64,000 nt of DNA, from the NCBI RefSeq assembly GCF_001194135.2, contig NC_069001.1, positions 3,035,004 through 3,099,003 on the forward strand. The letters are read 5' to 3'. The notes under the pieces were generated by a model that ran no database searches, was not told the origin of the DNA, and saw only the letters and a program-made list of their open reading frames with translations. Below are positions 22,901-25,900 of this stretch, in pieces; within the stretch, counting starts at the first letter, position 1, and each line of letters begins with the position of its first letter. The stretch is from Octopus bimaculoides (taxonomy: Eukaryota). Made by a program: the position numbers and the translations under genes.

Positions 22901-25900
22901 GAACTGACAATGGTAAGAATAACATCTATTAATATCTTCAAGAGCAACTTCAACATTAACAGCAACAACAACAACAACAACAAGAATAAAGAACAGAAAC
23001 AACAACAAGGACTGCCAACATCTACAAGAACAGTTTCAACATTGACAACAACAATAACATCAACAATAACAGTAACAAGGATTATCAGCATCAACAACTA
23101 TGACCACAAGAAAATACCTGAAAGTGGAATACGAACCGAACAAAGTGCGGTGTCCCTGCAACCATCTTGGAGAGTAAGTCCATAAGAGAGTAACGGAAAT
23201 ATGACGACACAGTCTGCTGAATACGAGTCATGCTGGTTGATCCCTGTCCATGGCCCATCTGCAAATTGGAAGATGGAAGAATTTATGTTAGTTAAGGATA
23301 GAGAAGCATTTATTTGGATCAACAGCTTCTTCCCCGATTCCATATGCTTGTGTATGTGTGTTTGTAAGTATGAGTTTTGTTTTTATATATGTGTGTGTAA
23401 ATGTGTATATAAGTGCATTTAGTTGGTGCTTCCCAAATGCTTTGTGCATGTGTGTATAGTTATGTGTGTGTGTGTTGTGTGTCCCCGTCCTCACTGGGCC
23501 AGATTTCCACAGAACACAATATATGCCATTAGTTTGACAATGTAACCAAGAGAAATAGAAAATATAAAGTACATGATATTTCAGACAAACGTTCTTCATT
23601 GAGACAGAAGGAGAAAAGAATTAAAGAAAATAAAATTCTGAGGAAGCAACTGAATCGCATTGTTATTATCTTGCATCAACAGAACTTCCTTTACATTCTT
23701 TTTCCCTTCTCTGCTTATTCTTGATAAAGGGCAACCGTCCGAAACATCAAGTACTTATTATTACCTATCTAGTCCTTCCAATGTTTTACTAATATTATAT
23801 ACTGCCTATATAAAGGCATATGGGTTAGGATATTCAGCTCACAATCAAAAAGTCCTTGAGCAAGACACTTTATTTCAAATTGCCCCAGTCCACTCAGCTG
23901 TCAAAAATGAGTAGTACCTGTAGTTCAAAGGGCCAGCCTTGTCACACTCTGTGTCATGCTGAATCATCCTAAGAACTACATTAAGGGTACATGTGTCTGT
24001 GGAGTGCTCAACCACTTGTACATTAATTTTACGAGCAGGCTGTTCCATTGATCGGATCAGCTGGAACACTTGGCGCCGTAACCGATGGGGAGCCATATTG
24101 CCTATTTATGGTTTTGTTTACTTATCAATGTTTTTAAGTCCTTTTGTTGTGTTCTTGATAGATATTTACGCGAGGCTATATAGCTGGGCGGAGTGTGAGG
24201 TAGAGAGAGAGTGTGAAAGAGAGAGATGTAGAGAGAGAGAGAGAGAGAGAGAGAGATGGAGAGAGTAAAAGATGAAATGAGGGAAATGTGAGATATCACA
24301 CAAAGCAAAAGTGGAAAATTATATATATATATATATATAAACATACATACGCACACATATACAATATGCATACACACATGCATGCACACACACATACAAA
24401 TACACATACACATATACATACACACACAGAGAAATATATATTTACAACACATATATATATATATATATATATATATATATATATATATGTACATACACAT
24501 GCATTTATATGTATTCGTATACATACATGNNNNNNNNNNNNNNNNNNNNNNNNNNNNNNNNNNNNNNNNNNNNNNNNNNNNNNNNATGTATATATATATA
24601 TATATATATATATATATATATATATACATACTATGCTCACACACATCTTTTTCTTTTCTTTTTACTTGTTTCAGTCATTTGACTGTGGCCATGCTGGAGC
24701 ACCACCTTTAGTCGAGCAAATCGACCCCAGAGCTTATTCTTTGTAAGCCAAGTACTTATTCTATCGGTCTCTTTTGCCGAACCGCTAAGTTACGGGGGAC
24801 GTAAACACGCCAGCATATGCACACACATAAACAGACAAACAGACAGATAGATAAATAGGGACAGAGATTCTCACATTGGTTAAGAAACAGCAGACAACAG
24901 ACAAGAACACACATATTCATGCACACACATATACATATACATATATATATATATATATAATATTTAGTGTTAGTTCAAAATGCTTAAACACACCACAGCA
25001 CACATGTGTGTATATATATAGAGAGAGAGACACACTGCAAAAGAAGAAAGGCAAGCGAATGCAGCAGCAGCAGCAGCAGCAGCAGCAAGACTAGCTGGTG
25101 ATAGTAGTAGTAGTAGTTGTTGTTGTTAAGAATTACATATTGCTTTATTGATTTAGTAATGCTGTAAACCAATGTGACAAATACTTACAGATTTGTACTG
25201 GAAAAAAAAGACACAAACAAAAAAAAAATTAATTTTTATTACATTTGTAACAGCATATGTATAGACATATGCTTATATGTATATATATATATAAATATAC
25301 ATATGTATGTATGTATGCATGTATATATATGAATTATATACATATATGTGTATATATATATATATATGTATATACATATGTATGTATGTATGCATGTATA
25401 TATATGAATTATATACATATATGTGTATATATATATATATATATGTATATACATATGTATGTATGTATGCATGTATATATATGAATTATATACATATATT
25501 ATGTATATATGTATAGTTAAAAATTACACACAAGAAAACAACAACAAACAAAAGAAACAAGAGAGAGAACAACAAACAAGTTGTATCAGTTTGATGCTCA
25601 GGAAAAATGAAAGAAGTCTTTGATGTTTCAAGCCTATGCCCTAATTACATATTCATATATCCATAAACATATATCTATATGGTAAATGAAAGACGCAAGA
25701 TGGAATATACAAGAATTTTTATTAATCACAACGATTATTTCAGCATATCTTGCATTGAACCTTCAAGTGATGGATTGATGCTAGATAGGTCAAAACAATT
25801 GTGATTAATAAAAAATCTTGCATATTCCATCTTCTGTCTTTCATTTATCATATGCATAATGAACACTGGAAAGTGACCATGGTTTACCAGTAAGCTACCA

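Follow-up and report, generated by a model that had tools for sequence, protein, structure and literature searches.

Gene identity and architecture of the loop 2 region

The window analysed here is a stretch of 64,000 nucleotides from Octopus bimaculoides. Exons on its minus strand match myosin III of cuttlefish and octopus collinearly, following residues 302-1525 of a cuttlefish kinase + motor protein. The exons for the C-terminal part of the kinase were found at 54237-53631, and the O. sinensis orthologue, the top match of the 1870-aa query, carries PF00069, PF00063 and PF00612 (Pkinase, Myosin_head and IQ). This arrangement of N-terminal kinase, motor and IQ/tail identifies a class III myosin gene (NinaC/MYO3), of the photoreceptor type.

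Loop 2, a surface loop that contacts actin, is situated between the motor's upper and lower 50-kDa subdomains and is the main tunable part of the myosin actin interface. In alignments to solved myosins, the insert site studied here (query residues 70-120) falls in an unaligned gap between blocks matching myosin-15 residues 466-525 and 538-625, and the block that follows it matches chicken skeletal S1, starting at residue 638. By this placement the insert site is loop 2 of the motor; together with the kinase/motor identity of the gene, the alignment bears out an earlier note, made from the DNA letters, which had put a Tyr-Lys-Ser insert in this loop of a myosin III.

The coding region of the loop is interrupted by a long intron (Table 1). 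The upstream exon closes on a full codon at 40917 (...AGC AGA/gtaagt), and the downstream exon opens at 23258 (ttgcag/ATG GGC), whose borders are matched exactly by RNA contigs from about 20 runs. Because both flanking exons break between whole codons, a 9-nt insert reads Y-K-S in frame. The loose ends of the RNA before the microexons read ...CGTCAAACTTCCAACAGCAGA.

The intron is associated with three tandem 9-nt microexons, named here FEN, YED and YKS after the residues they encode. FEN, which the earlier note had missed, is known from RNA (TTTGAGAAT), and its letters are absent from the window sequence; the exon probably lies within one of two N gaps, at 39677-39803 or at 34062-34269. We had considered the cuttlefish FEN (TTTGAAAAT) as an orthologue of YED and dropped this assignment, because the O. 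sinensis isoforms have FEN as a separate third exon.

Table 1. Features of the loop 2 region in the direction of transcription (window positions)
Feature	Position	Strand	Description
Upstream exon	40917..41008	-	codes (G)+30 residues, N-terminal part of loop 2
Intron housing the microexons	23259..40916	-	17.66 kb; interrupts the loop 2 coding region
YED microexon	33619..33627	-	TATGAAGAT; second of three tandem 9-nt microexons
Putative YKS branch point UUAAU	25228..25232	-	yUnAy match with its A 32 nt before the exon; motif-based prediction
YKS 3' splice site	25198..25228	-	U-rich tract T10 GTTTGTGTC T8 CC + AG; contains UCUU
YKS microexon	25189..25197	-	phase 0/0 cassette, TACAAATCT; window letters, RNA contigs and O. 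sinensis YKT
YKS 5' splice site GTAAGT	25183..25188	-	window letters; RNA joins TCT straight to ATGGGC
(UGC)9 / CUG-type repeat	25061..25087	-	100-128 nt downstream of the YKS donor
Downstream exon	23137..23258	-	41 residues: loop 2 end and next conserved helix

Splice signals of the YKS microexon and chance expectation

YKS, the last of the three, reads TAC AAA TCT (Tyr-Lys-Ser). With 9 nt it is well within the microexon range (<=27 nt), and it is a multiple of 3, stop-free, in phase 0/0 and bounded by canonical AG/GT borders (cag/.../gtaagt). Its minus-strand context is ttaa-T10-gtttgtgtc-T8-ccag/TACAAATCT/gtaagtat, which agrees with the motif as described in the earlier note, except that the second T run counts 8 T in the window and 9 T in the earlier description. 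The acceptor AG occupies 25199-25198 and is preceded by a pyrimidine tract of 28-29 nt (89% pyrimidine). The closest upstream AG is 76 nt off, and within this AG-free zone the UUAAU given in Table 1 was the sole yUnAy match, besides one at -95. The acceptor design is unlike that of YED, as had been proposed: it has the long U tract, and its closest upstream UGC lies at -58, in contrast to YED, which has UGCUGCUG with UGC at -17 and -20. Downstream of the donor, the (UGC)9 run may be a regulatory element or a mere microsatellite.

Two other origins or effects of this sequence were considered. The window holds no second copy of YKS and no repeat family membership was found for it; a repeat or transposon origin was rejected on the absence of a second copy. 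RNA structure around the exon was not significant (z = +0.56), so that a structure masking the splice sites is without support.

Splice-site strength was scored with a crude, purpose-made PWM, with the 23 true acceptors of the same gene as the reference. On this scale the YKS acceptor scored 9.1 and ranked in the top quarter of the gene (median 4.4, maximum 16.3, n=23), whereas the donor scored 4.7 against a gene median of 7.5, its intron side being perfect and its exon side TCT. The previous description of YKS as one of the strongest splice-site pairs therefore applies to the acceptor but not to the donor. In-frame candidate pairs with a score of at least 13 numbered three on the sense strand (CMH, YKS and YED), all inside the 17.66-kb intron, and three on the antisense strand in the whole 64 kb. 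The latter count corresponds to about 0.8 equally good in-frame pairs expected per 17.6 kb, and the YKS motif by itself is therefore not significant. Such an expectation would suit a reading of YKS as splicing noise, in which an AG...GT pair that arose by chance within this long and AT-rich intron is used occasionally and has no selected function. On the other hand, CMH (37448), a candidate that scored at least as high as YKS, was never found in the RNA contigs, which argues against noise as the source of the YKS transcripts described below.

Transcript evidence and isoform use in O. bimaculoides

The exon is real despite its insignificant motif, because RNA contigs carry it spliced. The order SNSR/FEN/YED/YKS/MGHG was present in transcript contigs of three public runs from two studies: X30 (7504 nt, depth 15.4), X36 (3466 nt, depth 17.8) and X37 (7270 nt, depth 14.2). 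In all three, the 30 nt before the downstream exon read AGA/TTTGAGAAT/TATGAAGAT/TACAAATCT, the nine YKS letters were identical to those of the window, and YKS was spliced directly to the exon starting at 23258. The proposal of a genuine 9-nt coding microexon is thereby confirmed by spliced RNA, and so is the insertion of Tyr-Lys-Ser immediately before MGHGQGS, as the contigs join YKS to the MGHG exon. YED was found in the contigs of X2, X3, X4, X6, X10, X12, X13, X30, X36, X37 and X39, and in those of X8 and X11 its exon reads TGTGAAGAT.

Isoform counts refer to the dominant contig of each run; Logan contigs retain the main path only and give no inclusion percentages, and the tissues are coded. 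Among the 16 informative runs of O. bimaculoides, the dominant contig contained FEN only in X1, X9 and X31, YED only in X2, X4 and X6, FEN and YED in X3, X8, X10, X11, X12 and X39, all three microexons in X30, X36 and X37, and no microexon in X5. YKS was the least used of the three, and in these contigs it never occurred without FEN and YED. YED occurred without YKS in nine runs of O. bimaculoides (10 with one run of a sister species), so the suggestion that YED and YKS are used differently holds. The RefSeq model of O. bimaculoides, XP_052831248.1, has none of the three inserts. For three further runs analysed as raw reads (X21-X23), only 2-7 reads fell on the exon, too few for an inclusion estimate.

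Expression level and isoform class went together. Runs with about 100-fold higher expression of the gene were without YKS and used FEN or FEN+YED, and the two top-expression runs, X1 and X12 (depth >1000), belonged to this group. Within study P3, X4 and X6 had YED at a depth of about 85, X36 and X37 had FEN+YED+YKS at about 15, and X12 had FEN+YED at about 1400. The dominant class thus recurred across runs of a single study and tracked the expression level, as far as coded tissues and dominant contigs represent it.

These observations decide the case of constitutive inclusion, which the earlier note had held possible and by which a strong polypyrimidine tract would put YKS in essentially every transcript. 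The high rank of the acceptor and the presence of the corresponding insert YKT in most O. sinensis RefSeq isoforms (isoforms X1, X3, X4, X7 and X9-X13) are in its favour. However, the dominant contig was free of YKS in 13 of the 16 informative runs, including those of highest expression, and the third insert is missing from isoforms X2, X5, X6 and X8 of O. sinensis as well as from the O. bimaculoides RefSeq model, the Argonauta model and cuttlefish transcripts. The YKS-free dominant contigs already refute constitutive inclusion, to which we give practically no credence.

Orthologues and age of the splice hot-spot

The myosin-IIIb-like gene of O. sinensis spans 189 kb, and its RefSeq isoforms X1-X13 (XP_036367892.1 to XP_036367904.1) carry FEN, YED and YKT between ...RQTSNSR and MGHGQGS, in seven of the eight possible combinations. 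YKT stands directly before MGHGQGS, the outcome that the proposed check of mollusc orthologues had looked for. By order and by sequence, YKT and YKS are probable positional orthologues, and the S/T change is conservative. The two Octopus species thus share the gene, the junction and the combinatorial use of FEN, YED and a third insert, and differ in the third insert, which is YKT there and YKS here, the O. sinensis isoforms being automatic models.

Outside the genus, neither the one Argonauta model nor the transcript assemblies of two cuttlefish data sets contained YKS/YKT. On the strength of these sequences, YKS may be a young exon, confined to Octopus and with a modest functional role. The intron itself, however, has an older record. 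In the scallop Pecten maximus (L002), a 15-nt IYSAL microexon at 43395-43409 stands between the GGSR exon, whose last position is 41832, and a further exon beginning at 48543, so that the orthologous scallop intron holds one microexon between the same flanking exon boundaries; IY[SG]AL-type inserts also alternate between RefSeq isoforms in Mizuhopecten and Haliotis. The presence of a microexon in the same intron of scallop indicates that molluscs have had this splice hot-spot for a long time.

The absence from the Argonauta and cuttlefish sequences, like the restriction of YKS to runs that express the gene weakly, would be expected if the exon were splicing noise. Against this, the YKS form was dominant in three runs from two independent studies, and a second Octopus species keeps the insert in frame with a conservative S-to-T change and has it annotated in several junction combinations. 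We regard noise as a distinctly improbable explanation and conclude that YKS is, very probably, a real alternative cassette microexon of octopus class III myosin, the last of the tandem FEN/YED/YKS series.

Candidate control of YKS inclusion

As a cassette of only 9 nt, YKS could be recognised through its extended U-rich tract, together with a branch point at about -32 and a GUAAGU that is perfect on the intron side. Trans-acting factors may decide on its inclusion, by a route different from the UGC-reading Srrm/eMIC one that has been proposed for YED. Candidate regulators, guessed at the level of motifs, would be PTB-type repression acting on the tract that contains UCUU or, alternatively, CELF/MBNL-type factors acting on the UGU-rich tract or on the downstream (CUG)n.

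The competing explanation is that YKS is a standard Srrm3/4 (eMIC)-dependent neural microexon, co-regulated with YED via a shared UGC-based enhancer. The bilaterian Srrm3/4 programme comprises very short in-frame neural or sensory exons that alter surface loops and have a long AG-exclusion zone (PMC8797185), and YKS resembles these in being a 9-nt in-frame exon of a sensory/neural gene with a 76-nt AG-exclusion zone and a long pyrimidine tract; moreover, in O. bimaculoides it occurs only alongside YED. However, eMIC exons have weak acceptors (PMC8797185), whereas the YKS acceptor is strong and above the gene median, and YKS has no UGC within 57 nt of its 3' splice site, unlike YED and unlike the scallop microexon, which has three UGC within 20 nt of its acceptor. 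YKS thus shows neither of the two eMIC hallmarks, a near-upstream UGC and a weak 3' splice site, and many runs include YED without YKS. Dependence on the eMIC route is in our estimate unlikely, though less so than noise, and control by other trans-acting factors is the reading that we prefer.

Possible effect on the motor and relation to known systems

At the protein level, YKS would add a single positive charge and two side chains with hydroxyl groups beside FEN+YED, which bring three negative charges. Actin affinity and ATPase respond to changes in the length or charge of loop 2, and in non-muscle myosin II, inserts in this loop change the activity (PMC10480317). By analogy, the altered length and charge of the octopus loop would shift actin affinity and actin-activated ATPase. 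YKS might also supply a phospho-acceptor in a loop known as a phosphorylation target in class III myosins: according to PMC6981383, phosphorylation of myosin III on its actin-binding region lowers ATPase and actin affinity.

A comparable case is the mollusc IYSAL-type microexon. It occupies the orthologous intron between the flanks TG/NL...SR/ and /...SMTRIQQTV...HFVR/, and it is, like YKS, a tiny in-frame cassette with an aromatic residue that alternates between isoforms. It differs from the octopus arrangement in being one exon of 15-18 nt instead of three of 9 nt, and its sequence does not resemble that of YKS; UGC motifs stand at its acceptor, which likens it to YED but not to YKS. The inserts B2, C2 and A2 of vertebrate non-muscle myosin II are likewise alternatively spliced cassettes that lengthen loop 2, are tissue-restricted and change actin-activated ATPase (PMC10480317). 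They are, however, non-homologous single inserts of 21-33 residues in a class II myosin, in contrast to the three residues and combinatorial use of YKS in class III. Within class III, this loop is also phosphorylated by PKA and by autophosphorylation in Limulus myosin III and vertebrate MYO3A, which lowers actin affinity (review PMC6981383, with the titles of its references 87-91); there the control is post-translational on constitutive residues, whereas in octopus the residues are added or removed by splicing.

These elements can be joined in a single reading, which we put forward tentatively and consider possible rather than probable. Octopus myosin III would possess a combinatorial loop 2 code of three microexons, FEN (-1), YED (-2) and YKS (+1, plus a Ser and a Tyr), which would allow as many as 8 variants and would have expanded from one loop-2 microexon of ancestral molluscs. 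The combinations would differ between sensory or neural cell types and thereby set actin affinity and phosphoregulation. The top-expressing samples, presumably eye (tissues are coded), would use FEN with or without YED, and a low-expressing cell population would use all three. YED would in addition be recoded from Y to C (CED, position 33626) by A-to-I editing, to which a SNP is the alternative; splicing and editing would then act on the same nine residues. If true, three separately selectable 3-residue cassettes would provide graded, cell-type-specific tuning of a photoreceptor/sensory motor without gene duplication.

No published description of the FEN, YED or YKS exons was found in the literature searched, and the loop 2 site, as an old alternative-splicing hot-spot common to scallop, abalone and cephalopods, is apparently likewise undescribed there. 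The locus also illustrates how annotation pipelines come to miss 9-nt exons, since the RefSeq model omits all three, FEN probably lying in an assembly gap.

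Gene identity and position of the YKS exon

The minus-strand exons from 54237 to 1606 match in order residues 302-1525 of a 1581-residue cuttlefish protein that combines a kinase domain with a myosin motor. The closest database relative is the myosin-IIIb-like protein of Octopus sinensis (domains Pkinase, Myosin_head and IQ). Where exons align cleanly, they match XP_052831248.1 of O. bimaculoides at 100% identity, so the window comes from this species or from one that cannot be told apart from it. The segment after ...HTPLTKIG falls in an unaligned gap between the conserved blocks bordering loop 2 in solved myosins (myosin-15 residues 466-525 and 538-625, the second matching chicken skeletal S1 from residue 638), which agrees with the loop 2 location proposed in the earlier note. 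An all-frame search placed the YKS motif between the exon ending ...RQTSNSR and that starting MGHGQGS...; because both flanking junctions are phase 0, the 9-nt insert is an in-frame Tyr-Lys-Ser. On the minus strand the motif reads in full ttaa-T10-GTTTGTGTC-T8-CCAG / TACAAATCT / GTAAGTAT; it exists as previously quoted, except that the second T run had been given one T too long.

Coordinates of features in the window and at the Pecten maximus locus L002 (slashes in sequences mark splice junctions)
Feature	Position	Strand	Remarks
Upstream exon, end ...RQTSNSR	40917	minus	donor AGA/GTAAGT
N gaps in intron 23259-40916	39677-39803 and 34062-34269	minus	
CMH candidate	37440-37448	minus	ccag/TGTATGCAT/gtgcat
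YED exon	33627..33619	minus	TATGAAGAT; same 17,658-nt intron as YKS
YKS acceptor AG	25199-25198	minus	
YKS exon	25197..25189	minus	TACAAATCT
YKS donor GTAAGT	25188-25183	minus	
(UGC)9/(CUG)n microsatellite	25061-25087	minus	100-128 nt 3' of YKS donor
Downstream exon, start MGHGQGS...	23258	minus	acceptor TTGCAG/ATG
VGRTPYYDA tail segment	~17476-17502	minus	adjoins gap 17326-17473
Alternative terminal exon	~16879 (16879-16968)	minus	end of XP_052831248.1
808-codon open frame	8484-10907	minus	
P. maximus ...MGGSR exon end	41832		
P. maximus 15-nt exon	43395-43409		ATCTACAGTGCACTT (IYSAL)
P. maximus next exon start	48543		

Evidence from RNA

Logan contigs of public RNA runs (numbered with an X, their tissues given only as codes) were aligned to the repeat-free interval 23120-23330, and the 30 nt past the acceptor at 23258 were read for each run; such contigs represent the dominant path only and therefore give no inclusion percentages. 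In runs X30, X36 and X37, AGA/TTTGAGAAT/TATGAAGAT/TACAAATCT precedes MGHG, which is direct evidence that YKS is spliced as YED/YKS/MGHG. All three contigs (3.5-7.5 kb, depth 14-18, from two separate studies) contain the nine letters of the window exon exactly, and three runs of raw reads gave just 2-7 reads covering the exon. In the other runs, the 3-residue microexons FEN (TTTGAGAAT) and YED were found between SNSR and MGHG as FEN (X1, X9 and X31), YED (X2, X4 and X6), FEN/YED (X3, X10, X12 and X39) or FEN/TGTGAAGAT (X8 and X11), and SNSR was joined directly to MGHG in X5. Thus, the contigs bear out a loop-2 microexon adding YKS, and they refute the suggestion that it is possibly constitutive, since the main contig lacks it in 13 of the 16 informative runs of this species, including X1 and X12, in which transcripts of the gene are about 100-fold more plentiful (depth 650-1500). 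Within one study (P3), the forms recur in pairs (YED in X4/X6, all three microexons in X36/X37), which favours regulation over noise. YKS is almost certainly a real, alternatively used coding microexon. Runs of a sister species, recognized by the signature CLKPNTQKI as in O. sinensis/vulgaris, contained FEN (X14 and X44) or FEN plus YED (X13).

Most of this species' RNA contigs include FEN, but its sequence with splice sites was not found anywhere in the window; an assembly gap on the upstream side of YED probably contains this exon. At base 33626 of the YED exon, RNA of X8 and X11 reads TGTGAAGAT, encoding Cys-Glu-Asp, and the genome and the remaining YED-carrying runs read TATGAAGAT. Seen on the transcribed strand, this A-to-G difference points to A-to-I recoding of Y to C within a microexon; the alternative is a SNP. 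The YED exon and its donor are predicted to pair with an upstream UACUUAUCAUCUGCUG, the overall z-score being only -0.99.

Splice signals and likely regulation

Splice sites were scored with our own crude donor and acceptor position weight matrices (PWM). Among 307 stop-free AG-N(3-30)-GT candidates in this intron, YKS ranked second and YED third. The YKS acceptor scored 9.1 (23 true acceptors of the same gene: median 4.4, maximum 16.3) and its donor 4.7 versus a gene median of 7.5. Across the 64-kb window, the antisense strand contains three candidates of equal total strength, corresponding to about 0.8 expected by chance per YKS intron, so the YKS sequence by itself is no proof. An origin of YKS as a repeat copy was rejected. 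The top-scoring microexon candidate, CMH, was absent from every RNA contig examined and is a useful negative control, in that PWM scores by themselves can mislead.

The YKS pyrimidine tract spans 28-29 nt (89% Y, including UCUU and UGUUUGUGU) within an AG-free zone of 76 nt, and UUAAU, whose A lies at -32, is the sole well-placed match to a branch point. No UGC occurs within 57 nt upstream, and fold prediction gave no significant RNA structure around the exon. The YED acceptor side carries UGCUGCUG at -17/-20. Microexons dependent on Srrm/eMIC are reported to have UGC near the 3' splice site and weak 3' splice sites (PMC8797185); YED and the scallop exon fit these features, whereas YKS does not. 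Together with the YED-only and FEN-plus-YED runs lacking YKS, the UGC near the YED acceptor supports the earlier suggestion that the two exons may be regulated differently. YKS would be recognized through its strong intronic signals, and its use may be gated by factors other than Srrm/eMIC; at the motif level, PTB-type repression acting on the UCUU tract is one candidate and CELF/MBNL-type factors are another. The downstream (CUG)n may serve as a platform for MBNL-type binding or be just a microsatellite.

Orthologues and age of the site

The O. sinensis protein belongs to a 90% cluster with 13 RefSeq isoforms, which at the loop-2 junction read FEN-YED-YKT (isoform X1), FEN-YED (X2), FEN-YKT (X3), YED-YKT (X4), FEN (X5), YED (X6) or no insert (X8). 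This set indicates three tandem 3-residue cassettes, the last of which (YKT) is the counterpart of YKS. FEN-YED is present in the Argonauta hians model and FEN only (TTTGAAAAT) in two cuttlefish transcript assemblies; the O. vulgaris and O. bimaculoides models have none of the three, and YKS/YKT has so far been seen only in the genus Octopus. In arthropod myosin III, ...NSR runs straight into GLASQSR. In scallop and octopus, the flanking exons have the same outer boundaries, TG/NL and HFVR/C. Inserts of the IY[SG]AL type are found in some RefSeq isoforms and missing from others in Mizuhopecten (X3 versus X9) and Haliotis (X1 versus X2), and they also occur in oyster, clam, limpet and sea-hare models. 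Together these indicate that the intron is orthologous and that a loop-2 microexon is older than the bivalve/gastropod/cephalopod split, with cephalopods having 9-nt exons instead of the IYSAL-type microexon (15 nt in scallop) of other molluscs. The scallop IYSAL acceptor (tgctgcgttgcattccag) is UGC-rich, with three UGC within 20 nt.

Possible function and other isoforms

Relative to the skipped form, FEN changes the charge by -1, YED by -2 and YKS by +1, and YKS also brings one Tyr and one Ser. Loop-2 length and charge determine actin affinity and maximal actin-activated ATPase, and inserts of 21-33 residues in this loop have a strong effect on the activity of non-muscle myosin II (PMC10480317). 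According to PMC6981383 and its reference list, the actin-binding region of class III myosins undergoes autophosphorylation and, in Limulus, phosphorylation by PKA, with lower ATPase and actin affinity as the result. The likeliest role of YKS, which we propose only tentatively, would be to fine-tune the actin interface, and possibly also its phosphoregulation, in cell types that include it. Alternative microexons and myosin loop-2 inserts are of a known kind, and automatic RefSeq models of O. sinensis already include the orthologous exon, the exon itself being unannotated in O. bimaculoides. A literature search for these loop-2 microexons found no paper; what specialists might find new is the three-cassette combinatorial layout and how deeply the site is conserved in molluscs.

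The last exon of the RefSeq model XP_052831248.1 (1319 aa) is an alternative terminal one, and the model lacks all three loop-2 microexons, so that the gene annotation is incomplete. The tail segment VGRTPYYDA results when a 5' splice site 27 nt further downstream is used as an alternative (AAACAG/gtgGGACGC...GATGCC/gtaagt); it is missing from O. sinensis isoform X7, and cuttlefish sequences differ by the same segment. About 1.4 kb (10877-9465) of the 808-codon open frame is coding in long O. sinensis isoforms; the frame is present in many RNA runs, is absent from cuttlefish transcripts and short O. sinensis isoforms, and looks like an alternative long-tail exon.
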